Of a stretch of 64,000 nucleotides of DNA, positions 4,414 to 45,142 are shown piece by piece. This DNA is from Mytilus californianus (Eukaryota). How positions within the stretch are numbered: position 1 is the first letter of the stretch; each line of letters starts with the position of its first letter. The position numbers were made by a program, and so were the translations under genes. The notes beneath the pieces were generated by a model that did no database searches, was not told the origin of the DNA, and was given only the letters and a program-made list of their open reading frames with translations. The DNA is taken from positions 16,864,001 through 16,928,000 of the forward strand of contig NW_026262637.1 in assembly GCF_021869535.1 (NCBI RefSeq), read 5' to 3'.

Positions 4414-4679
4414 AATTTGACTATAAACATAGATAAAAAAAGGTACAAACTGGACATAATGCACTAGTTCATAAACAAGTGAGAACAATCACCTTCATAT
4501 AGTGCTCAGAATATGACATTCATAAAAACTTGTTCAATATCATTAGAGAACTCTAAATCTTAAATACTGAAAGCCACCTCTGATAAGTACACTGTACTAT
4601 GCAAGATAATGATATAACTGGACTAAAAATACACACAACCTGTAATTAACTGCCTTTACAGCGCTTTCGCGCTTTGATT

Positions 4680-5243
4680 CTACATTGTGAACAATATTTG
4701 GACAATATACAGCTATTTTACGTCTGATGATATCTTCGGGGACACAATGGAATGAGTTATCTATACCGTCAACCAGTGGATATTTGGTTCTAAAATTAAA
4801 TAAACATGTACACTTTGATATAATAATAAGCCAGGAAAGTTAACAAAATACACATTCTTTCTAAGAACTTAAATATACAACTTTTATTGTGGAATTTAAA
4901 ACATTACTTTTCTAAAATATTCAACAAATCATTTCACAGTATTCAATTTGGATATGTTAATAGTTGTTATATTTAATTTCACATTTTTTATCGTTTTGGC
5001 ATATTCATTTTTTCTTTAAATGCCTGTTATTCATATTTTGTTTAACTATATTGTTACATTTTTTTCAAGATTAACACATTGATTTGGCCTTCAAAAATTG
5101 TTTAATGCTGTATGTGTGAGAGGCATAGTACGTAATTCATTCTGAACTTACCCGCATTGCATATAATAAACAATTTGCTGCCATGGCCGGATAACATTAC
5201 ACATGGTTGTCCTTCCTGGTTCGTATTCATACCAAACAGTTGT
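4680..5243 (-). pseudogene. Truncated third copy of gene A (3' half of exon 4, intron 4, 5' half of exon 5)
   Basis: 5152-5243 matches A1 9783-9874 with the gtaagt donor intact. 4789->4680 matches A1 exon 5 from 9419 with the ttttag acceptor intact. It has a 1-nt deletion (gtgaacaat vs gtggtacaat) and ATG->ATA and CAA->CAT changes. Homology stops abruptly at both ends. Confidence 0.9.
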
Positions 5244-5436
5244 ATAGTCTATTCAATTATGAGAATTTCCAAGTATTTGGTCAATTTATCAAATTGTAAC
5301 TATTTAAATGGACACTTGTCTGAATCAGTCAATGAGAAAAGAAGCATGGATGACTTCCATAGGAATGCCAACAGTCTGTTAAACAGGTTTATTTTACAGA
5401 GTTTTATCTTTCTACCTATCTATCTATCTATCTAAG

Positions 5437-6955: not shown

Positions 6956-9193
6956 AAAGAATAAATTGTAATCTGTAACTCTCAATCCAAGTGTTAATCG
7001 ATATTTGATAAGATAGATGCAAGAACTTTGAAACGTTTTCGTGGCGAACAAAGAATCTGACTTTTTTTGTTGGAATACCAGTGCAATCTATATACTGGTA
7101 TCTATTATAGTAAAGCAGATGTTAGGTAGAACACTCTAGGAAATCTGTCTCAAACTGGTCCCAATTCTGGCAGATTTCTTTTCTTTTTTTTTAATAGACA
7201 ACATGAAGTTTGGATATAATATTTTTCATGTGTCGAAATGTAACTAAAACATCAACTGCATTTCGCTGGTTTTCTTTCTGGATCCTTTCTCATGGTGTTT
7301 GTGCTGTTACATGTACCTTTTCTACTCCTTGATTATTGCATTATATTGGTTTTTTATCTCCTTGTCAATCAAAACATATTCACTAAGAATTGTTTTCAGA
7401 TGTCCAATTATCAATTCAGAAAGAAAGGGAAATGGAAATATATTGTTCCATTTGTATTTCCGTTATAGATCCTTTTGCTTGATAAAATGTGGATAAACTA
7501 TTTATGCAAGGGTATCAAGTGGTGAGGTTGAAGTCTTGTATTTGAAAGATTCACAAGTCAGTCGACCATTATTAAATATCTATGTCACAGATGATAACGG
7601 ATATGTTCCAATTGTTGCAAAATTGAGAATGGAAATGGGGAATATGTCAAAGAGACAACAACCCGACCAAAGAGCAGACAATGCCGAACCACAATCTCAA
7701 TTGTAACCAAAATCTCGTCTTCTTTTTTCTAAATTGTTACCTCACAACGTAAGACTTGTAACCAGATTTATACTTCCATGAGCAACACGACGTTTGTTTC
7801 GTGTGGAGCAGGAACTCTTTCGGATTACCTGAGTTGACACCAAATTTAAGTGTGATTAGTTTTCGTTATATTTTGCCATTTCGTATACGTTGTCAGTTTT
7901 TCTTCATTTTGTGAGTTGGAAGTGTCCCCTTGGTATCTGCAACCTCTTTTTATGAGGGGAAAATGTAAGGAAACAACGACCTGTACTTATAAAAATGATA
8001 CAAAAGATGCAGTAGACATCAACAATTATTGTAATGACGCATGGTCTTCCACAAGTATTCCTGACACAGACCTTTATATCTCCAAAATTTTAATTCTGAC
8101 GAAATTTAAATATCAACAAAGAACTATATAATGGTCTAGCGTTAAAAAAATAAGCCTGATTTCTTATCATATCAAAGATTTAAATAGTATGAGCTCATCA
8201 GAATGCAGTTACTGAGACTGTTAACATTTGTCTGTAGACTTTTCTCAAATATTTTTTTTCTGATGGCATTACCAAATTTTGAAATTATAATTCCACTATG
8301 ATTCATATTCACATGAAGTTATATTTCGATTGAAAATTTGTATACCGACAGTCAGGTTATCTCTTGTCTTTTATTACTACATATAAATATAACACATTGT
8401 AGACCTTGTAAAATTTATATAGGGAACAATTATGATAATTTGTTACATTATAAAAGCTATTTATGGAATAACGTTAAGCCCAAGGTATCAAAGTTGTTTA
8501 CGATTATGTGAATTATTCATGAATACAATAACAAATAAGAAATGTACATAAACATAGAAAATAGTGTTTCAGCAAAGAGTAAACAAGTTCAAGACCTGCA
8601 TGGAATGATGAATTAATTAGAGCGCTATTTCGATTCCATAAATATCCTGACTTGCAAAATGTCCCAAAATTTGTGAAAGTTGAGTATCACCTAACTTAAT
8701 AACAAGATATTAGCAACTCATAAAGACATGAATGGCGAGTTTCTTTTGCAGACATAATTGTTTTACATGTAAAATCATAGACCCCTCTTTTACAAATTAT
8801 ATAATTTTGAAAATGTATCCAACTTAATTTATACGTAGACTTCGAAAACAAGCCTCCGATGTGTATTTTCAAAGTGACAAATTAGAATTGGCATGTTAAA
8901 TAGATTAGTACATCTACGCTCGTTTGAAAATGTAAACTGTTTCAAACTTTTTTCAATATTGTGTTTTTAAATCTTTTCTCTGTAGGTTTTGCTCACTAAA
9001 CTAAAAAGTCGCAAGACAGTGTTAACGCACAAAATATTGATAATAAACAAGGATATATATTTTAAACAAACTTTATTTTGCAATATCAATATCAAAAATA
9101 GTTACAAAAAAACTAATAACAAGTATTAAAAAATCACAGATTACTTAATGTCACATTGGTGTGTCCAGTAAAGCGACTTACTCGCTGTACTGA

Positions 9194-11174
9194 TTACCAA
9201 CCAAAAGAAGCAAAAAGATTGTCTAATTTAGATTGTTGTGAAATCTTTTTCTGTCTACATTGGAATTTGCTAGCAGCACAGTGTTGTGGTAGGTCAATAT
9301 CCATTTTTCTACATTGTGGTACAATATTTGGACAATATACAGCTATTTTACGTCTGATAATATCTTCGGGGACACATTGGAATGAGTTATCCATACCGTC
9401 AACCAGTGGATATTTGGTTCTAAAATTAAATAAATATGTACACTTTGATATAATGATTATTCAGGAAAGTGACTAAAATACGCACTCTTTCTAAGAACTT
9501 AGATTTACAACTGTTATTGTGGAATTTAATACATTACTTTTTTAAAATATTCAACAAATTATTTCACAATATTCAATTTGGATTTGTTAATAGCTATCAT
9601 ATTTGATTTCACATTTTTTATCATTTTGGCATATTCATTTTGTCTTTACATGCCTGTTATCTATACTTTTTTAACTGTTAAGTTACTTCTTTGCAAGATT
9701 AACAGATTCATTTGGCCTTCATAAATTGTTTAATGTTGTATGTGTGAGAGGGATATTTATACGTAATTCTTTCTGAACTTACCCGCATTGCATATAATAA
9801 ACAATTTGCTGCCATGGCCGGATAACATTACACATGGTTGTCCTTCCTGGTTCGTATTCATACCAAACAGTTGTAAGGTTAGTATAAGAGCTTGGACATA
9901 TACTGCCACATTCTACAATCTGTGGTCCACTTGGATTTCCAATATCAAGTGGGCAAATACTATAAAAGACAAGTTGAAATACATTTGTCATTCAAATAGC
10001 AGGTTGCATTAATTTCTCTTTCTTCAATGACAATTTATATACGTTTTCTGAAGATTATTCTAATGTGGTATTACTACTCTTTCATTTTCTTTGGCATTTT
10101 AACAGTTATGTTTTATTATGACGGTAAGTAAAAATAATTATAAGAATACACTTACTGAGGGTCATCATAAGGAACAGCTGGTTGGTATATTTTACTGGCA
10201 TCTTCTAAATACATCTGGATTTCTTGGTCGTCTAATATAGCCTGTTCTATTGCCAAACTGCATTAAAAAGATAAAGCAGTTATTTACAGTGCTAATTAAC
10301 AAAAATAACAACAGAGCTACTGTCAAATGTTTTTTTTATGTTTCATTCAATTCTTGTGGAAATGTGCCTTATTAAATGTTTGATAATGAAATTGCAAAAC
10401 ATAATGTAACATCTCTTAATCAGGTGTGTCGTTGGCTGTGCGGGATGTATTTTTGTCTTCAATACGCATTAGATATTTGCAACTGGACCCAAATAATCTA
10501 ATAGAGAATATCACATGCGTATTTAAAGTTTTGAGAGATATCCTTCAATTGTTTTAGATTTCGTGCATAAATAGATGTACCACCATTTTCTACACGAGGA
10601 AATTCCTGTCAGGAATATGACATTTGTTTTCCATTCGTTTGATGTGTATGAGTTTTTGATTTTTCCATTTGATAAAGGATTTTCCGTTTTGAATTTTCTT
10701 TGGAGTTCGGTATTTTTGCTATTCTGCTTTTTATATAAGTAGATAGATAATTCAGTTTAGCAGTATCTTCAAATTTATTAGGTATACATTGTAAATGCCG
10801 GAAACAGGGAATGCAGCAGGATGTTTCAAATAATTATTGAAAGCTAAACGGGTGTAATTCGAATTAATTTAACTGCAATTCAAAAAGTAAGTTGAATGTG
10901 GATAAACGATGAGAATTTTGTAATTAAATGGCTACCATTCGTTCACACTGGCTTAACAAATAGCATGCTTCCAGTGCTTCTGGAGAGTTTGAAATTCGTG
11001 CATCAATATAAAATACTGTATAAAAATGTATACGTACTGATTGTATTCTAACGGATCATGGCATATCTTTCCCATGTCTGGCCATCTGTTTTCAATCGGA
11101 TCAACAATACATTTCTTTCCAAATAACCCAAACACACACGGCAATACAGCAAGGAAAAATATACTTTGTCTCAT
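9194..11174 (-). CDS. Gene A1: secreted Cys-rich protein, divergent Spaetzle/neurotrophin-like (incomplete cystine knot), 213 aa
   Basis: Coding exons are 11174-11038 (137 nt), 10257-10156 (102), 9959-9783 (177) and 9419-9194 (226). All introns are GT-AG and phase 2, and the joined frame is open. Protein: MRQSIFFLAVLPCVFG|LFGKKCIVDPIENRWPDMGKICHDPLEYNHLAIEQAILDDQEIQMYLEDASKIYQPAVPYDDPHICPLDIGNPSGPQIVECGSICPSSYTNLTTVWYEYEPGRTTMCNVIRPWQQIVYYMQCGTKYPLVDGMDNSFQCVPEDIIRRKIAVYCPNIVPQCRKMDIDLPQHCAASKFQCRQKKISQQSKLDNLFASFGW. It has a hydrophobic signal peptide, a non-coding exon 1 at about 11460-11432 (donor gtaaac) and AATAAA at 9077-9072. The structure is well supported; the family call is by Cys spacing and similarity to gene B. 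Confidence 0.88.
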
Positions 11175-11431
11175 CTACAAAAAATAATGAAAATATTATA
11201 TATAGAATTTTGGTTTAATGGCAGAAGCTTTCTAATCGAAATAAAAAAATGAAAGCGCTTATTTCGCTTCACAATATATGCAAAATTTGATCGGATTTGA
11301 TAACTTGCATTGTGTCACAAGTAAATGTGTGCTTATTATTTTTCAAAGTAAATAGTATACATCTTATATGTGAGCTTCTTTATATTTTTTCCCTTAATAT
11401 GCTAAAGATGGAGTACAAGAGAATAGTTTAC

Positions 11432-11723
11432 CTTTTTACTTATGTCTCTGTCTATGTTCTGTCATCCACCAGCAGCAGTTATCTTTATATACACAAATTT
11501 CAGTGACAAGGAAATATACATACTGACCAATCGCTGACCATAATGTTTTATTATGACCTCAAAAACAACGTCACGGACATTGTCCTTGATGTGCGTAAAC
11601 TAATTAATCATCATTGTCAAAATATAGACACTATTTGTCAACATTTATTCTATATAAAGGCCAAACTTGACTATTCATATCAATTAGTCCTAATTTTGCT
11701 TAAAGTGACCACGGTTAAAAATG
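11432..11723. promoter_or_regulatory. Bidirectional promoter of A1/B1 with two outward-facing TATA boxes
   Basis: Minus-strand TATATAAAGA at 11491-11482 lies ~30 bp before A exon 1. Plus-strand TATATAAA at 11651-11658 lies ~25-30 bp before an Inr-like tcaatt (11680-11685) and B exon 1, which ends ATG|gtaagt. The same layout is kept in copy 2. TSS positions are inferred. Confidence 0.75.
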
Positions 11724-14700
11724 GTAAGTGAATATATTTCGTTATTCAAAATACAGTTATTTTAAAGAAAAAAATTGAATCTTTCAAAATTGTTGAATAA
11801 ATAATATTTCAAATCCAAAGTGTATAAAGTATGATAATTCATTCAAACATTTTTTGGTTCAAATTGGTCAAAAGTGTCTTATCATTTGTTTTTACAAAAT
11901 ATCGTAGTAAGAACTAATTATATTTATTTCAAACGTTCGGAATTTTAACAAAGTTTAATGTTAAATGCCCCATGGAATTATTTAGCAAACACAACTTTAA
12001 TGTATTAAAAAATTCAGCATATTAGAAATATTCAAAATATGTTTTTCAGTTCAAACTACTACTGACTTGTGCCATCATTGCTTATGTTTCGTGTGTACCT
12101 ATGAATGTATGTAATAACTACAAGTATTTGTATGACCAGTGTCTGCCACACAGGAACTGGATATGTGATAAACCAGCCGGTTATTCCCCTCTCGATATGT
12201 AAGTAGTTCCCATGAATATTACTTTGTTTTCATGATTCACCTAAGATCTGTTTATAAAACACGAATCTTCAACTTCTGTTATTCAGTTTTAATATATTTG
12301 AAATTTTTTGTTTGATTCACCGGATGGTATGAAGGTAAATAAATGCAAGGTATGAATAATTAATGCAAATAATAGCATACAAGATATAATTAAGGAATGA
12401 CTGCAATATTTTTTCTTTCTATGAAGAAATACCATAAAAAATGTGGTTCACACTGAATAACCCGCGTAGCGAGTTATTTAAAAGGGTGCACCGCATGTTT
12501 GAGGTTATTTCGAATAGACAGAAATAATATTACAGTCATTCCTTAATTATATCTTGTATATTATTCTTTGCATTAATTATTTCTATGAGCTGAATCGAAA
12601 TACTTTTGTCTTTAATGTGCTGAAAATGAAGGCAATTGTTTACGAAAATATTGTCAAGATTGAACTTATTAATTTTATTTTTGCATGGTAGCACTTTCTT
12701 TTAAAGTATAAAAATGTAAACATTACAAATTTTAAAGAAGACTGACAGTATTTCAATTGAAATACAGAAACACCAATACTGATGTATACTGTTGTTAATC
12801 AATTGTTTTATAAAATTATATGTTTGTCTCTTTAATTTGTTCTCATTTTAAAGGCGTGGATTGAAACAAAAATTGTCAAAAAGTGATGGATCATTTATCC
12901 ACTATATCAAGTCATGCAGTGAGTGTTTAGGAGATCCAGCTCCATATGGGTAATTATCATTTAAACCTTATTGTATAACAAATAAACATATTCTAATATG
13001 TATGTATTAACATTAAAACCTTATTGCACAATATAGTTACACATAAGTCAACCGATGGGTAAAACTAATATTAATTAACAATAAATGTTATTTAGAGCAG
13101 ATTGGAATGATAATTAAACTGGGTGGATAGATTGATGTTAATGTTCAGTGGAGCATATTACATGCATATCAGAACGAAAACATGAAAGTTAAGAATTTTA
13201 ACAAAATGATTTTTCATCTTTCCATCCAGCTGTAGAGTTTTATTTTTGATGAAAAGGTTTAATATTTTTCTCTGATGACAGTTACATAGATTATTAAGCC
13301 CACCTTAGAAGTGTCTGCATTAGAATGTGGAAGTCTAGAAATTCGAGATTAGTTGTTTCGTTGTTGTGCCCATAACATGATACCCCTTTATCCCATTTCA
13401 ATTAAATTGAAAATTATGTTAAACGGTAGAACAAATTATTTTCTGTCATTCATCTTCAGTTAAGGGATCTATCGTCATCTTTGATCGTGAAATAGAAGAA
13501 AACATATTCCGTCTAGATGTATAATACAATGAGCACATTTCGAGGCAGGCATGCAACTCATTTTTAAGACTTCATTTAAATGAAAAACATTATTTGATTT
13601 TATCTTATTGTTTCAACTGTTTTTGCAAATACGGAATCTGTTTTGATTGATTAAAGAAAAAAAACTTAGCCTTACAAAGGAAGATATCTTAGATAATTTA
13701 ATTTTATGAAGGAATGTACAGTGACCGCATTTTTTCTTTTTCTTTTATTTTTGTAAGAACTGATAGAGATGTTAAAAATCAGTTAGCAATGGTTCTAAAT
13801 TATTTTTATTTCCATATATACTTATATTTCAGGGAAAAAATCGATTATGTAAAGAAACCAGTTTGTCGTGAAGTTAAGATACCAATTGAATATATAAACA
13901 AAACCGTGTATCATGAACTGACTGGAGTAGCAGAAGGCTATGAGGTGTGTCAGGTCATACTGAATGGACCCGACAGAAATGTACAGAAAATATACAGAAC
14001 CGATTGTTACAACGGGTAAGATGATCAACTGTATTTCATTTTTTTTGGTTTTAAAAGCTTCCTAATCATTTAACGTGAAACCCAAAAGCAATTAAGCAAT
14101 AGTGATCCTCTTTGATTGCAGATATAACACATCCTCACCTGAACTTCATCGCGCAATTTATTAATATCATAAAATTACAATCATCGATTGTTGCTTGCTT
14201 AACGCCAAGTGGTCAGTCAAATATCGTCAGCTAATCTTAGGACGGAGGTATTATGGTATATCGTTGTCCTATCGTCCGTCTGTCCGTCTGTCTGGCGTAA
14301 ACATGGCGCACGCCGACTTTAGAATGCATTGAGCGATCTATTTCAAACTTTCACAAAATAATGAGAATGGTTATTTTTGGTGATTTTCACTTTTGTCAAT
14401 AGACAGTTATGGGACTTAAATCTTCAAAATATAAGCAATTTTGCACACCCACTGAATTACACGCTCCATTTGACAAGTTACGGTTACAATGCCGTTTATA
14501 ACGATTGATAAAGACATTCATATCATATTCTCCGTGTGCCCTCCGAACGCTCTTGCTTATATTTAATTATGTTGATGTATATTATTTCTTTTTTAGCATT
14601 CATCTTTTATTTTTTCCGTTAAAGTATTCCTATAAACATTGGAGTTGTATAATGAAAATTGACCAACCAAATTCCTGATAATCCTGCGGAAGTAAATACA

Positions 14701-15184
14701 TATTTTTTCATAAAATCAATTTCTGTTAGTTTTAGGTTTTTTGTAAGGATATACATTGTAACACCAAATCTTAAAAGAGAACTTTGTAAAAGGTTTTGTA
14801 CATGCAATCCTGCTTTTGAAAAAAAAATATTTATTCATTCGTTCATGTTTGTTGTCATCGTTTTGTTAATTGAAAGTTAACCTTTGATTTTTCAGAGATG
14901 AGAGAAAACAGAACAATTACTGTAGATTTGACTATGGGGTGTTCAAGCAATATTTTTGTAGACCAACAAACTTTGTGTACAGAACCATGCTTATTGACTG
15001 TCCATTGACGGGATTACAGTATTACAAAGAAAAGGTATCAACAGCATGTAGCTGTGTTAAAGTCAAATGTTTAACAGGAGAAATTCCAGGACCCGTCAAC
15101 AATCATGGGATCAGACAGGGACCCGCACACATCCAACAAAGTAGACAAAAAACAATAGTTAAAACAAAACCAGGCTTGTTTTGA
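11721..15184 (+). CDS. Gene B1: secreted Spaetzle/neurotrophin-like cystine-knot protein, 239 aa
   Basis: Exons are 11721-11723 (ATG), 12050-12198 (149), 12854-12949 (96), 13833-14015 (183) and 14896-15184 (289). Introns are GT-AG, phases 0,2,2,2, and the joined frame is open. Protein: MFKLLLTCAIIAYVSC|VPMNVCNNYKYLYDQCLPHRNWICDKPAGYSPLDMRGLKQKLSKSDGSFIHYIKSCSECLGDPAPYGEKIDYVKKPVCREVKIPIEYINKTVYHELTGVAEGYEVCQVILNGPDRNVQKIYRTDCYNGDERKQNNYCRFDYGVFKQYFCRPTNFVYRTMLIDCPLTGLQYYKEKVSTACSCVKVKCLTGEIPGPVNNHGIRQGPAHIQQSRQKTIVKTKPGLF. C94/C141/C153/C165/C195-x-C197 and the segment ILN..VQKI..DC match the Spaetzle pattern (IVN..Q.I.IEEC..C..C..P.CC.C). AATAAA at 15286-15291. Confidence 0.88.
12355..12580. 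mobile_element. Small MITE-like inverted-repeat element in B1 intron 2
   Basis: aataattaatgcaaa..tacaagatataattaaggaatgactg at the left end is mirrored by cagtcattccttaattatatcttgta..tttgcattaattatt at the right end. Only the left arm survives in B2 (~42146). Confidence 0.65.
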
Positions 15185-16199
15185 AAATCCGAAGCTTGTA
15201 TACCTGACTGTGATATTTATGTTTTACAATGTTTTGCTATGTGTATATTAGTTTTGTTTTGTTATTGTTACCGTATAAGTACCTAAATAAATTCGTCAAT
15301 TAAGCTATAATATTCATTTCATTATTTGAAGTCTCAAACGTAGATATAATAAATTTTATCACAATAGAAAAGCCCGGTCTCTTAAATTGTTTTTTTTATT
15401 CAGATATAGTTCGTTTATTTGTAGTTTTGCATTATTTACATCTATCCAAGGAACCTGTCCATTATCGCCTTCATGGTTCATAAACCGTTTTGAAATGTCT
15501 GTCGTTCAGACTCAATGTATTAACACTTATAAACAGGACATGAACAGCTTTCAAAAATAAACTAAACACATACCGTATAGAAAGCTTTACATATCCATGG
15601 GAATAAAAATGTGCAACAATTCAAATGGTAAAACCAAAGTCATGACTTACGTTAAAAGCAATAAACGAAAAAGAAAAAAGCAGACAACAACCAATGACAA
15701 CCACTGAAGTTCCAGTTCACTTTAACTCTGAACTCATAAGTTTCAAATGCCATCATTATATTACTTTCATGTTTTAACAAATAGGCAATGCAAAAATGTT
15801 TGAAAGACGTGGATATACTTCAATAATGTAACAACAAAGCGATTGAAAAAGAGATCAAAACATGTATTGAACAAAAATCTCTCCGACTTTCATGGAAGTG
15901 AATAAATTCAACAGAGAACATCAAACATCTGCCATTAGATTTCCGATATGACAAACACTCAAGATGAAACTAACGATGAGCTGATAGGATTCCGGATTTG
16001 GACAAGGCATTTAAATAGTTCATGTGGAAAGGTTAAAGTATTTTTTTCCAATCTAGATCAGTGAAACAACAAAAAAAGGACGTACCAAAAAACAAAACTG
16101 TTGACAAATCAATATGTATTGCCTTTAGGTTATTTTGATAGTATAAAATGGGACTAATACATTAAATGTACCTATTAGTCCAAGGTATAATGCAAATGT

Positions 16200-38523: not shown

Positions 38524-40919
38524 TTACCAACCAAGAGAAGCAAAAATATTGTCTAATTTAGATTGTTGTGAAATCTTTTTCTGTCTACATTGGAATTTGC
38601 TAGCAGCACAGTGTTGTGGTAGGTCAATATCCATTTTTCTACATTGTGGTACAATATTTGGACAATATACAGCTATTTTACGTCTGATGATATCTTCTGG
38701 GACACATTGGAATGAGCTATCCATACCGTCAACCAGTGGATATTTGGTTCTAAAAATAAATAAACATGTATACTTTAATATAATGATTAGTCTGGAAAGT
38801 GAACAATATACACACATTCTTTCTAAGAGCTTTAATATATAACTAATATCGCGGAATTCAAAACATTACTTTTTAAAAATACGTGTGTATTCAACAAATG
38901 ATATCACAATATTCAATTTGTAATTTTTATTGGCTATCATATTGAATTTGAATTGTTTGCTCATTTTGGCATTTTACTTTTGTCTTCCATTTGCTTTATA
39001 TGCCTGTTATTTATAATATCATTAACGGTACCAACTTTTCGGCACCAGATGTGCATTTCGACAATAAATGTCACTTCAGTGATTCTCTAGGCCAAAATAT
39101 TTGAAAATCCAAAGCTTATTAAAAAAAAGGAGCTTATAAAACAAAAAGGACAAAAAAGTCGGGCAAGGAATCAGAGCTTTGCATGAGGGGGATATATTCC
39201 TTTATTTAAAATAATTTCCAAAATTGTGTAACAGCAAATTTTAATAACAGAAAATCCGTATTTTCATACCAGTATCGAATTACTGGCTACTGGGCTGAAT
39301 TGATACTTCTTTGCTTACCGGTAATTAAGTTGGCCTCCAAAAACTTTATTATTGTATGTGTGAGAGGGGGTCTCAACTAAATTCTCTTCTCAGAGTCTAG
39401 TTATATGTTCATACCGGTCATACTGATTTCATTTTGAACTTACCCGCATTGCATATAATAAACAATTTGCTGCCATGGCCGGATAACGTTACACATGGTT
39501 GTCCTTCCTGGTTCATATTCATACCAAACTGTTGTAAGGTTAGTGTAAGAGCTTGGACATATACTGCCACATTCTACAATCTGAGGTCCACTTGGATTTC
39601 CAATATCAAGTGGGCATATACTATAAAAGACAATTTGAAATACATCTGTCATGCAAATAGAAGGTTGCACAAATTTCTTTTTCTTGAAACGCCTATCAAG
39701 TCATCTACTTTTTCACTATTTAAATTTTATTTTAATGTGGTTTTTTTTTTCTTTGATATTTTAAAATTTTAAGTTTTTTCTGATGTTATGTAAAAATGAA
39801 GAAGACTATACTTACTGAGGGTCATCATAAGGAACAGCTGGTTGGTATATTTTACTGGCATCTTCTAAATACATCTGAATTTCTTGGTCGTCTAATATAG
39901 CCTGTTCTATTGCCATACTGTAATAAAAAGATAAATCACTTATTAACAAAGGAAATTTAACAAAAATTACAATTTTTTAGCTTTTTTTCTCTCATTTAGC
40001 TCAATTCCTGTTCAATCGTGTCTTATTGAATTTTTGATAATGAAATTTCCAAACTAACTGTAACATCTCTGAATGAGGGGCGTCGTATGGCTGTGCGGGA
40101 TGTATAAACAGTTACGGCCGGTCGAATGCGTTATTATGCCTAGTTCAGTGAGAGTGTCATGCTAGCAAGAATCATTGAATCGATGAGTCCATAAGTTACC
40201 TGTTGCTAATCGAAATTTCCAAACGTATTTAACGTATCGAACCCTCTGTTTACTGAGACGGTAGACATTTACCGCTAATCATTATTTTCGTCTTGAGTAC
40301 ACATTTAATACTTGCCACTGGATATTACCCAAACAATCAAGTAGAGAATATTGCATGCGTACGTAAAGTTTTGAAAGGTTTGAATTTAACGTAATAAATC
40401 TTGATATAAGGAATTCTGATATATTAAGACAACAACTCTTTAGATAAGTTCTTGTGTAAAAGTAATCTCCAGCAGTTATGTTTAAGTTGGAAATGGTAAG
40501 ATTTACGTTGATGTTAAGCAATGCATTATTTTAGCGTTTTAAACTTCCGAAGACAGGAAATGAAGCTGGGCGTTTCAAATAACTACGGTAAATTAATCTA
40601 CATCGTATTGACAAAGACTGCAATTCAAAGGTTATTTGAATGTGGTTACCCGAACAGAATTGTGTAATAAAATGGTTACCATTCGTTCACGCTGGCACAA
40701 CCAGTAGCATGCTTCCAGTACTTCTTGGAGAATTTTAAACTCATGCATCAATATCAACAACTGTATAGAAATGTATACGTACTGATTGTATTCTAACGGA
40801 TCATGACATATCTTTCCCATGTCTGGCCATCTGTTTTCAATTGGATCAACAATACATTTCTTTCCAAATAACCCTAACACACATGGCAATACAGCAAGGA
40901 AAAATGTACTTTGCCTCAT
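38524..40919 (-). CDS. Gene A2: paralogue of A1, 213 aa
   Basis: Exons are 40919-40783 (137), 39917-39816 (102), 39620-39444 (177) and 38749-38524 (226). All splice sites are intact and the frame is open. There are 6 aa differences from A1 (I5T, F15L, L47M, N150S, L207I, F211L) and all Cys are kept. Non-coding exon 1 ends at 41199. Confidence 0.88.
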
Positions 40920-41198: not shown

Positions 41199-41488
41199 CT
41201 TTTTACTTATGTCTCGTCTATGTTCTGTTTGCCATCAGCAGCAGATATCTTTATATACACAATTTCAGTGACAAGGAAATATACGTACTGACCAATTGCT
41301 GACCATAATGTTTTATTATGACCTAAAAACCAACGTCATGGACAATGTCCTTGATGTGCGTAAACTAATTGATCATCATTGTCAAAAAATAAACACTATT
41401 TGTCAACAATTATTCTATATAAAGAATAAACTTGACCATGTATATCAATTCGTCCTAATTTTGCTTAAAGTGACGACTGCTAAAAATG
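41199..41488. promoter_or_regulatory. Bidirectional promoter of A2/B2
   Basis: Minus-strand TATATAAAGA at 41257-41248 and plus-strand TATATAAA at 41416-41423. Colinear with 11432-11723. Confidence 0.75.
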
Positions 41489-44400
41489 GTAAGTGAATGA
41501 ATTTCGTTATTTTAAATCCATTTATTTTAAGGTTTATGTATTGCATTACAATATTAAATCTACAAAGTTGTTAAATAAATAATATTTCTAAACCCCAGTG
41601 TATGAAGCATGATAATTCATTCAACACTTTTTTGGTTGAAATTTGTCAAAAGAGTTGTATGATTTTATTTTTAGAAAGTTTAGTTAAAGCTAATTTTATT
41701 TATTTCACACGTTTGGGTTATTAACAAAGTTTAATGGTTCATGCCAAATGGGATTATTTAACAAAAAAAAACTTAAATGTCTTTTGAAAAATAGCATAGT
41801 TACATGAAATAATCATTATGATATTTGTTTTAGTTCAAACTACTACTGACTTGTGCCATCATTAACTTTGTTTCGTGTGTACCTATGAATGTATGTAACA
41901 ACTACAAGTATTTGTATGACCAGTGTCTGCCACACAGGAGTTGGATATGTGATAAACCAGCTGGTTATTCCCCCCTCGATATGTAAGTAGTTCCCATAAA
42001 TGTAACTTTGTTTTCATAATTCATCTTAAGATATGCCCTTAAGATATCCTTACAAAATGTGAATCTTCAATTTCCGTTATTCAGTTTTGATATATTTAAA
42101 ATTTGTTTGTTGGTTCATTTTATGACTGTAAATAAATGTAAGGCATGAATAATTAATGCAAAGAATAATACACAAGATATAAATATGATTAAAAAAAATA
42201 TAATGCAAGATAGAAAAATAACTTATGCGACTAGGAATAAATATAAGTTTACTAAGTTAAAAAGAAGTGATTCTGAGTATGGTCAACCATACGCGAGGGC
42301 CCTCTTGTTGAAATCAGATACAAATTACTGTTAATAAAACTATTGATGATCTATAGAATCGAAATACTTTTGCCTTGCATGTGCTGAAAAGGTAAGCAAT
42401 TGTTTAGAAATTATTGTCGCCATGGAGACTAATTTTTCCATGGTATCACTTTCTTTTAAAGTATTAAAATGTAAAAATTACAAATATTAAATAAGATTTT
42501 TCAATTGAAATATACATAAACAAATACTGATGTATACCGTTGTTTATCAATTGTCTTATAATTGAAATTGTTGTCTTTTAAATTTGTTCTCTGTTTTAAA
42601 GGCGTGGATTGAGACAAAAATTGTCACAAAGTGATGGATCATTTATCCACTATATCAAGTCATGCAGTGAGTGTTTAGGAGAGCCAGCTCCATATAGGTA
42701 ATTATCATTTAAACCTTATTGCACAATAGATAAACTTATTTAGATATGTATGTATCATTTCTTAGTATATGCATCGCACACTTCAGCTACTATTTCTACC
42801 AATAAATGTCTAAATTATCTCCATACAATTAAGCACCTAAAGTTGTCTCTACTACATTTGATAATAAATGGTAAGAGGTAACGTAATTCAACCGATGGAC
42901 AAATCAATATATGAAATTAATAAAAATATTATTTAGAGCAGAGACGGATTGACAATTAAAAGTTTGGATTGATTGATATTAAGGTCCAGTGGGAATTATT
43001 AGATGCATATCAGAACAGTTAAGATTTTTACCCAAATTAACATTTTTTCTTTAATCTCTCCAACCCTAGTATTATTATTGATGAAAATGGGCAATACTAT
43101 TTTTCTCTAATGACAGTTGCATTTATGATTATAAAACCTACCTCAGAAATTTCTGCACTAGAAAGTGGAAGTCTTGACGGAATGTAATTGTTTAGTTGTT
43201 GTGCCACTAACATGATACCCCTTCATCCCATTTTATTTCAATTAAAAATTATGTTAAACGGTAGAAAAAAATATTTTCTGTCGTTCCTTTTCAGTTTAGG
43301 CAGCAGAGGCGGCTTCTGTCATCTTGGATCATGCAATAGAAGAAATCATTTGGTCTAAATGCATTATGCATTTAGCAAAGTTTGAGATAGAATGCTATTC
43401 ATTTGTAAGACTTTATATAAATGAGAAACATTATTGTATTTCATCTTATTAATTCGACTGTTTTTACAAATACAGAATATTTTTGATTGATTAAAGAAAA
43501 TAAACTTTGCCTTACAATTAAGGGAAGATATCTTAGATATATCAATTTCATAAATACAGTATTTTTTTTCATTTTGTACTACAGCAAAAAAAAAAAGTTA
43601 CTGCATGTTATCTTTTTATTTTTCATTTTCTAAGAACTGATAAATTATTGTTGAAATAAGAATTAAAAAATTAAAAATTAAAAAATCACTTGGAAATGGT
43701 ACCAGATTATTTTTATTTGCATAGATATTTATATTTCAGGGGAAAAGTAGATTATGTAAAGAAACCAGTTTGTCGTGAAGTTAAGGTACCAATTGAATAT
43801 ATAAACAAAACAGTGTATCATGAACTGACTGGAGTAGCTGAAGGCTATGAAGTGTGTCAGGTCTTACTGAATGGCCCCGACAGAAATGTACAGAAAGTTT
43901 ACAGGACGGATTGTTATAACGGGTAAGATGATTAACTGCATTTCATTGACTGATTAAGAAGCTTCATAATCATTACTATACAACTTGTAAAGTGCGAAAA
44001 GCAACTCAGTAATACTGGTCTTGCTTGATTTCAGATATGAACATCTCCATCTGAACTTCATCAGGCAATTTAATTATGTTATATAGTTCAATATATCATT
44101 TGAATGTTGCTTCCGTTATTGTCAGTGGTCAGTAAAATATAAAGTCATCTATAAAGTTGCAATAATGTTAAATAAAGATGCTGATAATATCTTGGCTAAG
44201 TTTCCATAATCCCGTTAAGGACAGATGTATTGTAGTACATCGTTGTCCTACCATCCGTCTGTCCGTCGTAAACATGTCGCATACTGACTTATGAAGGTCT
44301 CCAGCTACTTTATTCCAATTACCCGAATAATCAGAATGGTTGTCTGATGGTCTATATACTTTTTGGTGATTATCACTTGTGTCGGTTGGACAGTTATGGG

Positions 44401-45142
44401 ACTTCGAAATTTAAGAATTTTTTTACACGCATTGAACAACAGGCTCCATTTATAACGCTGACAATGTCTTTTATAACAATTGATGGGGACATATCTATTA
44501 TGTGTTTAGTGTAATTTCTCTACCCCCCCTCCCCCCCCCCCCCCCCATCATTTAACTATTATTTTAACTTTTTATTGTGTTCTTATAAACATTGCAGTTG
44601 CATATATTATAACGAAAATTAATCAACAAAATTCTTGATAATCCTGCACAAGTTCGTATATATTTTATTCACAAAGTTTAAAATTAATTTTTGTTGGCTT
44701 AAGATTTTTTGTATAATATATAATCAAACGAAATCTTAAAAGAGCATTTTATTTGCAAAACTTTTTGTACAATCCCATTTGTTTTATTAATTCATTCATT
44801 CTTTCATTTTTGTATTCTTCATTTTGTTAATTGAAAGTTAACCTTTGATTTTTCAGAGATGAGAGAAAACAGAACAATTACTGTAGATTTGACTATGGGG
44901 TGTTCAAGCAATATTTTTGTAGACCAACAAACTTTGTGTACAGAACCATGCTTATTGACTGTCCATTGACGGGATTACAGTATTACAAAGAAAAGGTATC
45001 AACAGCATGTAGCTGTGTTAAAGTCAAATGTTTAACAGGAGAAGTTCCGGGACCCTTTAACAATCATGGGATCAGACAGGGACCCGTACACATCCAACAA
45101 AGGACAAAAACAATAGTTGGAACAAAACCAGGCTTGTCTTGA
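41486..45142 (+). CDS. Gene B2: paralogue of B1, Spaetzle/neurotrophin-like cystine-knot protein, 238 aa
   Basis: Exons are 41486-41488 (ATG), 41834-41982 (149), 42602-42697 (96), 43740-43922 (183) and 44857-45142 (286). Splice sites are intact and the frame is open. By hand count there are 18 substitutions and 1 codon deletion relative to B1, and all Cys are kept. Confidence 0.88.

Follow-up and report, generated by a model that had tools for sequence, protein, structure and literature searches.

Cystine-knot factors act as dimers, and bursicon and GPA2/GPB5 are each built from two paralogous knot subunits. In proteins of the DAN/CTCK type, an extra disulfide between two further cysteines (Cys a and Cys b) links the two fingers. 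Bivalves possess very large families of Toll-like and other orphan receptors and few known endogenous protein ligands. GPA2, GPB5 and bursicon each have their own genes in oysters (PMC8398477), lophotrochozoans yielded no Spaetzle gene in an early survey (PMC2772990), and the molluscan CRNF proteins (Lymnaea CRNF and Aplysia apCRNF) are secreted, cysteine-rich and proposed to contain a cystine knot, apCRNF being a protein of 123 aa with 11 conserved cysteines (PMC3966541). We describe here a pair of divergently transcribed genes, A and B, found at positions 9194 to 15184 of a stretch of 64,000 nucleotides from the mussel Mytilus californianus (contig NW_026262637.1, positions 16,864,001 to 16,928,000, forward strand; this whole stretch is called the window, and positions without a locus name refer to it). 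The two genes are paralogues with a predicted cystine-knot growth-factor fold, they are found head-to-head in four distant mollusc lineages, and we give about an even chance to the hypothesis that their products have a joint extracellular role, as a ligand or binding protein made of an A:B heterodimer.

Both genes are intact. When the exons were spliced by hand from the window sequence (9000-15400), gene A, on the minus strand, was found to have four coding exons and to code for 213 aa, and gene B, on the plus strand, five coding exons for 239 aa. All the introns of the two genes are of the GT-AG type, and every one of them is bridged by spliced contigs from RNA-type runs (X1, X2 and X7). Such contigs, which are 95-99% alike and may derive from paralogues or from a sister species, bear out the gene structures. 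The start codons (11174 for A, 11721 for B) are divergent and 547 bp apart. A previous reading of the window made from the sequence alone (hereafter the sequence-only reading) had already proposed these two spliced genes and this spacing, and had correctly remarked that the track of open reading frames (ORFs) shows only fragments of them, the mechanical ORF list being made of exon-sized pieces. The elements of this first copy of the pair (A1 and B1) are the following.

11432 to 11483 at least, minus strand: non-coding 5' exon of A1; joint 11174->11432 with 52 nucleotides on the far side, in an X2 contig.
11038 to 11174, minus strand: A1 coding exon 1, with start codon at 11174 and signal peptide; from the gene model, the N-terminus being common to the 213-aa orthologues.
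10156 to 10257, minus strand: A1 coding exon 2, conserved helical N-terminal region; joints 9959->10159 and 10255->11038 in X1 and X2.
9783 to 9959, minus strand: A1 coding exon 3, with Cys I, Cys a and Cys II; ends ...MQCG at a phase-2 intron; joints 9419->9783 and 9959->10156/10159.
9194 to 9419, minus strand: A1 last coding exon, Cys IV to stop; joint 9419->9783 in X7; match to the family hidden Markov model (HMM) with E 1.9e-28.
11175 to 11720, no strand: interval between the start codons, presumed divergent promoter; from the sequence and the ends of RNA contigs.
11721 to 11723, plus strand: B1 coding exon 1, the ATG only; joint 11720->12049.
12050 to 12198, plus strand: B1 coding exon 2, signal peptide and N-terminal Cys motif; RNA joints.
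12854 to 12949, plus strand: B1 coding exon 3, helical N-terminal region; joints 12198->12854 and 12949->13834.
13833 to 14015, plus strand: B1 coding exon 4, with Cys I, Cys a and Cys II; ends ...DCYNG at a phase-2 intron; RNA joints.
14896 to 15184, plus strand: B1 last coding exon, with Cys III, IV, b, C-S-C and a further Cys; joint 14014->14895; family HMM E 4.8e-25; closes with a tail of low confidence in the predicted model.

Protein B is 100% identical to XP_052088564.1, an "uncharacterized protein LOC127725546" of the Mytilus californianus RefSeq annotation. In the public annotation, A begins only at Met34 (window 11075), which leaves 180 aa and no signal peptide. The 213-aa frame is open, and its upstream ATG (11174) is in frame and lies 3' of a spliced exon of the 5' untranslated region (5'UTR) in RNA contigs, the 5'UTR intron (11175-11431) having its acceptor immediately 5' of this ATG; the full-length protein is matched by 213-aa orthologues in five Mytilus species. 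Secretome screens would miss A in the M. californianus genome because its public model is deprived of the signal peptide. On the other side, an upstream ORF at 11543-11731 (plus strand), within the B1 promoter and 5'UTR, is similar to the N-terminal 49-aa extension found in LOC127725815 (P0042), which is the 288-aa RefSeq model of a paralogous B gene; because this matching ORF is out of frame with the ATG of B1, the extension is likely an annotation artefact.

Both proteins display a hydrophobic, signal-like N-terminal segment, cysteines in the N-terminal half and a Cys-rich C-terminal domain (13 cysteines in A, 16 in B). This layout had been foreseen by the sequence-only reading, which had in addition called the N-terminal half a pro-region. 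That part of the description was not confirmed: in 12 family members, the segment that follows the signal peptide and precedes the knot contains no conserved RxxR or dibasic site, and confidence in the modelled N-terminal helices is high (see below), so that a pro-region is not established. In the models these helices look like part of the fold; cleavage of the N-terminal part by another protease is possible.

A and B resemble each other weakly in a direct BLAST comparison (24% identity over 104 aa, E 0.12), in which their cysteines align nonetheless. Full-length relatives were gathered with a mixed profile of A and B exons and with a B-type profile, and when the A-type and B-type families are aligned with hhalign, the match covers 183 columns, beginning at the signal peptide and extending to where the knot ends, with a probability of 99.7% (E 1.1e-26); three introns are located at corresponding sites in A and B, all in phase 2. 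Judged by these alignments, the paralogy of A and B is genuine and extends along the entire proteins, as had been suspected. The order of the cysteines is fixed in the family (I, a, II, III, IV, b, V, VI and one more after C-x-C), and Cys a, Cys b and the Cys IV-x13-Cys b spacing are invariant in the 12 family members examined. B has all six knot cysteines, including C-S-C, with a C-x11-C between Cys II and III, i.e. an enlarged loop, and all B-types share a C-R/N-x-x-Y motif after Cys III. In A, by contrast with B, Cys III is replaced by Pro and Cys VI by Ala (the knot motif of the last exon reads CAAS), and the same loss is observed in oyster A-types and in A', a more distant Mytilus relative of A. 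The A-types of Solemya and Haliotis keep C-S-C and a full knot; the loss of Cys III and VI is therefore secondary within the family. The ring between Cys II and Cys III, lost in A, varies from x3 to x19 across the family, with CGGHC and CGGEC in two abalone paralogues (C-G-G-x-C, a classical CxGxC) and CGTKTC in Solemya.

Structures were predicted with AlphaFold2 from a 32-sequence family alignment, which gave moderate models; for the A-type, the paralogue P0002, 96.7% identical to A1, was modelled in place of A1 itself. The mean predicted local distance difference test score (pLDDT) is 61.9 for B (mostly 70-86 in the knot core, residues 95-199, but falling to about 60 at 141-160) and 69.4 for the A-type (73-91 in the knot core, residues 100-190, and 88-93 in the N-terminal helices). 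In a Foldseek-independent search of 48,161 PDB chains, nearly all of the 39 matches listed with Z>=2 are cystine-knot growth factors or antagonists. The A-type model matches coagulogen (Z 6.3), noggin (5.3), IL-17A (5.3), NGF (5.0) and sclerostin (4.9), with IL-17A and IL-17F among the best structural matches at Z 5.3-5.9. The models thus predict a cystine-knot growth-factor fold for A and B, and we consider that their membership in the cystine-knot superfamily is secure, in agreement with what the sequence-only reading had proposed. It had also anticipated that a cystine-knot match for B should be obtained by profile or by structure: Foldseek does return such matches, with NT-4/5, IL-17A and NGF in first position and BDNF also at the top among PDB structures (NT-4/5 and NGF with E 6.6e-3 to 1.2e-2 and a template-modelling (TM) score of about 0.5), and no Pfam model is at or above its cut-off for any family member scanned. 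A, B and their close orthologues give no Pfam match at E<=10 (including those that UniProt automatically names Spaetzle-domain proteins), single exons of A and B give nothing, no NGF (PF00243) or IL17 (PF06083) match appears in any scan of family proteins, and no Cys_knot or Hormone_6 match reaches its cut-off. Assignment to Spaetzle/NGF, to DAN/sclerostin/CTCK or to IL-17 is not secure. As part of the even-chance hypothesis stated above, we would rather regard A and B as a family of their own within the superfamily, found so far in molluscs only.

Divergent A-type/B-type pairs are present at five loci in four lineages, Mytilus, Saccostrea, Solemya and Haliotis, and a second copy of the pair, a recent duplicate, is located further down in the window itself.

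Mytilus trossulus, locus L001: A on the minus strand, B on the plus strand, head-to-head, about 540 bp apart.
Mytilus galloprovincialis, locus L006, 6260-12539: A' and B' head-to-head, a second and much older module; A' is 37% identical to A.
Saccostrea cucullata, locus L002: 280-aa B-type head-to-head with an A-type, 822 bp between gene ends.
Solemya velum, locus L003: 197-aa B-type facing a 196-aa A-type, 4.8 kb between them.
Haliotis rufescens, locus L004: 242-aa B-type facing a 244-aa A-type, 588 bp apart; the two-gene module is tandemly repeated.
Window, 38524 to 40919, minus strand: gene A2, second A copy, intact, 213 aa, 207/213 identical to A1.
Window, 41486 to 45142, plus strand: gene B2, second B copy, intact, 238 aa, identical to XP_052088565.1 (LOC127725547).

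The gene models of the relatives were obtained by dynamic programming and ranked with the family HMM; the N-terminal exons of the reconstructed Haliotis and Solemya models are unreliable, and the database proteins P0097 and P0096 were used instead. The A' proteins (cluster of P0008) are about 225 aa long and the B' proteins (P0007 type) 232-240 aa, and in M. trossulus B' genes flank the A/B pair (L001, 1-2703 and 16478-19540). The B-type gene of the oyster Crassostrea gigas is LOC105346062. The sequence-only reading had suggested that synteny in other bivalves be checked; the head-to-head arrangement turned out to exist in oysters, Solemya and abalone, which strengthens the idea of a common function. 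The presence of this arrangement in Mytilus, Saccostrea, Solemya and Haliotis indicates that the pair is probably ancient, and duplication of the pair as a unit took place at least three times. Between copies 1 and 2 of the window, the ratio of non-synonymous to synonymous divergence (dN/dS) is 0.10 for A and 0.30 for B, with dS of about 0.12; by this measure both copies are under purifying selection.

In the best maximum likelihood tree of 26 full-length proteins, all A-types are separated from all B-types by one branch (support 73/84), and A and A' are sisters, as are B and B'; in an earlier tree that included partial sequences, the support of the A/B split was only 28/24. In approximately unbiased (AU) tests, separate origins of the pair in the individual lineages are not rejected (p 0.053 for Solemya, 0.14 for Haliotis, 0.31 for oysters and 0.31 for Mytilus), so that the tree alone is not decisive. 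Rare characters shared between the lineages point to a common origin of the pair, if one may judge from the sequences: the ATG-only first coding exon, which is also found in the best-scoring reconstructed models of the Mytilus B' and Saccostrea B-type genes, the C-R/N-x-x-Y motif, and the replacement of Cys III by Pro together with the loss of Cys VI.

Transcripts seen in RNA contigs extend out to 11483 on the A side and 11695 on the B side, on opposite strands, and the two transcription units consequently start within about 212 bp of each other. The motif TATATAAAG is found at 11651-11659 on the plus strand and its mirror image at 11491-11483 on the minus strand. The interval between the start codons is 81% identical between copies 1 and 2 of the module, versus 65-77% for the two introns compared. 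It had been claimed that A and B share one promoter: the short divergent interval and the proximity of the transcript ends are indeed there, and functional sharing would be a reasonable interpretation of them. Contigs of A and contigs of B occur together in X1, X2 and X7, which supports co-expression only weakly; the raw RNA-seq run X8 contains no reads on A or B, only on intronic repeats. We think that the conserved synteny supports co-regulation and, more weakly, the formation of a heterodimer.

Two intronic stretches (10590-10789 in intron 1 of A, 12390-12589 in intron 2 of B) show a very high contig depth in all runs. They are the sole parts with raw reads from X8 and have loose ends on both sides, and they behave like dispersed, transcribed repeat copies.

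How such a pair could work may be summarised as follows. A-type and B-type genes would be the members of an old, divergently transcribed pair of paralogues, each coding for a secreted protein of about 200-240 aa in which a conserved helical N-terminal part precedes a cystine-knot growth-factor domain at the C-terminus. The A-type of mussels and oysters would form an 'open' knot, as in IL-17, after losing Cys III and VI, and the B-type would keep all six cysteines. One short shared interval would drive both genes, so that the two proteins would be made together, and these would associate outside the cell as an A:B heterodimer, in the manner of the paired subunits of bursicon or GPA2/GPB5. We propose a paired function because the pair has been kept in four distant mollusc lineages and has been duplicated as a unit. 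Going one step further, we suggest tentatively, as a possibility that we would place short of even, that the module codes for a secreted molluscan ligand of two subunits which has escaped recognition so far, an orphan cytokine or hormone older than the split between bivalves and gastropods and made, in mussels and oysters, of one open-knot and one full-knot subunit. Candidate receptors for such a ligand would be an LGR, a mollusc Toll-like receptor, Trk/p75 or a BMP/Wnt component.

Several observations weigh against the paired-function hypothesis and deserve to be put together. The cysteine counts of both mature proteins can be even, so that no unpaired cysteine points to an interchain bond; the support of the branch between A and B is only moderate, and the AU tests leave room for separate origins; the co-occurrence of A and B in three contig sets, next to one empty run, is weak evidence of co-expression; and a divergent promoter can by itself hold two genes together without any binding between their products. 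A and B could instead act independently, each as a homodimer or a monomer, the arrangement persisting through cis-regulatory DNA that cannot be separated or through segmental duplication of neighbours. Cystine-knot factors commonly homodimerise, repeated local duplication is compatible with the AU tests, and A and B are strongly different in sequence and in the state of their knot. GPA2 and GPB5 of the oyster are reported not to be co-regulated in every case and may act separately (PMC8398477). We nevertheless find independent action unlikely, if still a serious competitor, since one A-type is associated with one B-type in all five loci of four distant lineages, the pairing survived the old duplication of the Mytilus module (A being sister to A' and B to B'), and plain tandem expansion would more often produce neighbours of the same type in the same orientation. 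Another explanation, of a different nature, is that A and B are not signals at all but structural or clottable extracellular material (coagulogen-like, or a component of byssus or matrix). Coagulogen of the horseshoe crab is the best match in the PDB structure search, over 130 residues (27-191 of the model), i.e. nearly the whole mature A-type model, and "Byssal protein-1" (A0A0G2YQ77), named as a Mytilus coruscus byssus protein (PMC5911496), is the second match of B among AFDB clusters (E 9.1e-5). Yet a Z of 6.3 is of a size often obtained for models that lack a clear Foldseek match, the identity to Byssal protein-1 is 14%, we see no sign of high abundance or of matrix-type repeats, and the pair is conserved in abalone, which is not known to make byssus; we regard this explanation as very unlikely. 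The match suggests in passing that a byssus protein may also have a cystine-knot-like fold.

The sequence-only reading had labelled A and B Spaetzle/neurotrophin-like, which would make them precursors from which cleavage frees a dimer of C-terminal knots, this dimer then activating a Toll-like or Trk/p75 receptor. UniProt automatically names some B orthologues 'Spaetzle domain-containing protein' (a name that current Pfam does not reproduce), six of the eight newly found B-type relatives have sub-threshold matches to Pfam Spaetzle (E 0.0038-0.15, profile positions 24/32/47-95 of 96), and predicted-model libraries, unlike solved chains, rank Spaetzle-tagged clusters first: the top AFDB cluster of B is a "Spaetzle domain-containing" protein (E 6.9e-7), and the top match of A in the Atlas shape search is an arthropod cluster that is 94% Spaetzle-tagged (143 residues aligned). 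The clusters that neighbour A and B in a language-model comparison are partly tagged NGF, Spaetzle or IL-17 (0.90-0.92, 180-187 shared features), and neurotrophins head the Foldseek list of B, as mentioned above. The label is not supported as it stands. Besides the complete absence of Pfam matches in A, B and their close orthologues, the distant B-types score only 13.1-18.3 bits on Pfam Spaetzle (PF16077), whose cut-off is 27, and DAN does equally well; the solved Spaetzle chains reach only Z 3.3 (3e07) and 2.5 (7b1c), below coagulogen, noggin, IL-17, NGF, sclerostin, gremlin and VWF-CTCK; no basic cleavage site is conserved before the knot; and the extra pair of cysteines and the CxGxC ring of abalone are not known from either NGF or Spaetzle. 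A Spaetzle/neurotrophin identity is thus improbable in our opinion, and we would say the same, at the same level, of the hypothesis that A and B are secreted binders of the DAN/sclerostin/CTCK type, for instance BMP or Wnt antagonists rather than receptor agonists. Sclerostin is the sole cystine-knot match of each of three family profiles among PDB sequences (E 0.033-0.5; the alignment begins at Cys IV and extends through C-x-C, with the Cys IV/Cys b segment placed on the C111/C125 segment of sclerostin), the best Pfam DAN scores are 18.6 bits (P0093) and 18.4 bits (P0012), with E 0.0019-0.006, and the last exon of B alone matches TSH beta with E 0.052. Sclerostin is also the top Foldseek match of the A-type model in PDB (probability 1.00, TM 0.57-0.58), SOSTDC1 is the top match among Swiss-Prot models (with Spaetzle-4 also leading), the order of the cysteines and the Cys IV-x13-Cys b spacing fit the DAN/CTCK pattern, and C-G-G-x-C is present in both abalone paralogues. 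But every score is below threshold (the cut-offs are 22 bits for DAN and 27 for Sclerostin, for which P0010 obtains 14.5 bits), a strict CTCK signature is found in none of the family members, Cys III and VI are missing from A, B carries C-x11-C where CxGxC would stand, and the structural matches to NGF and IL-17 are equal or better.

A few other features of the window and of the family should be mentioned. The last exon of B2 (44857-45142) differs from that of B1 by a one-codon deletion and several substitutions, in the C-terminal tail of low confidence; this tail is the fastest-changing part of B. The B-type of Haliotis rufescens (L004, 1-21529) has an insertion, its loop between Cys b and Cys V being 63 residues long versus 15-18 in the others. 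At lower coordinates than A1, the window contains the remains of another gene.

4600 to 5252, minus strand: remnant of a third A-type gene, with an exon-3-like part and part of an exon-4-like one, found by tblastn; family HMM E 3.8e-12 and 2.2e-9.

The match of this remnant to A ends after residue 172, and it is probably a truncated pseudogene fragment. A weak B-like tblastn match at 62.8-63.1 kb is no family member (HMM E 9.5).

All the members of the family are called "uncharacterized protein" in RefSeq, a few TrEMBL entries being automatically named Spaetzle-domain proteins, and we found no paper in which the locus or accession identifiers, mollusc Spaetzle-like proteins of this kind or a description of the family appear; the suggestion of the sequence-only reading that the pair is possibly undescribed is therefore in line with these searches. 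The pair provides a concrete and testable hypothesis, that of two subunits made from one promoter, secreted, conserved in bivalves and a gastropod and under purifying selection. It would also illustrate that a cystine-knot family can lose a knot-defining disulfide in one partner only, with the genomic partnership persisting.

How do A and B finally compare with the systems already described? Like bursicon and GPA2/GPB5, they are two paralogous secreted cystine-knot subunits that are kept together, the A-type and B-type genes being adjacent in 4/4 lineages and in both Mytilus modules, and they have a weak sequence affinity to the third loop of DAN and of glycoprotein-hormone-beta. Their length is about double that of these hormones, their N-terminal part is helical and conserved, and the A-types of mussels and oysters have one knot disulfide fewer; A and B are not bursicon or GPA2/GPB5 themselves, because oysters have those genes separately. 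With Spaetzle (PF16077) and the neurotrophins (PF00243), they share a signal peptide, a helical N-terminal part and a C-terminal knot that ends ...P-T-A-C-S-C, whereas they fall below the Pfam cut-off, have no conserved activation site, and possess two further conserved cysteines (a and b), a cysteine after C-x-C and, in abalone, CxGxC. Sclerostin, SOSTDC1 and the DAN/CTCK proteins provide the best sequence-profile match among solved structures and have the same order of eight core cysteines, with Cys IV-x13-Cys, but the scores lack significance, the ring from Cys II to Cys III is variable across the family and lost in A, and a folded N-terminal helical region is predicted in the latter. The A-types of mussels and oysters, without Cys III and VI, have the same 'open knot' as IL-17; they differ from it in the lack of any Pfam IL17 match in the family and in the full knot of the A-types of Solemya and Haliotis. 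CRNF and apCRNF, compared here by description only, are much shorter than A and B. In short, neither the fold nor the concept of knot subunits working in pairs is new; what appears undescribed is the family itself, the conservation of its divergent pairs and the loss of a knot disulfide on one side only.

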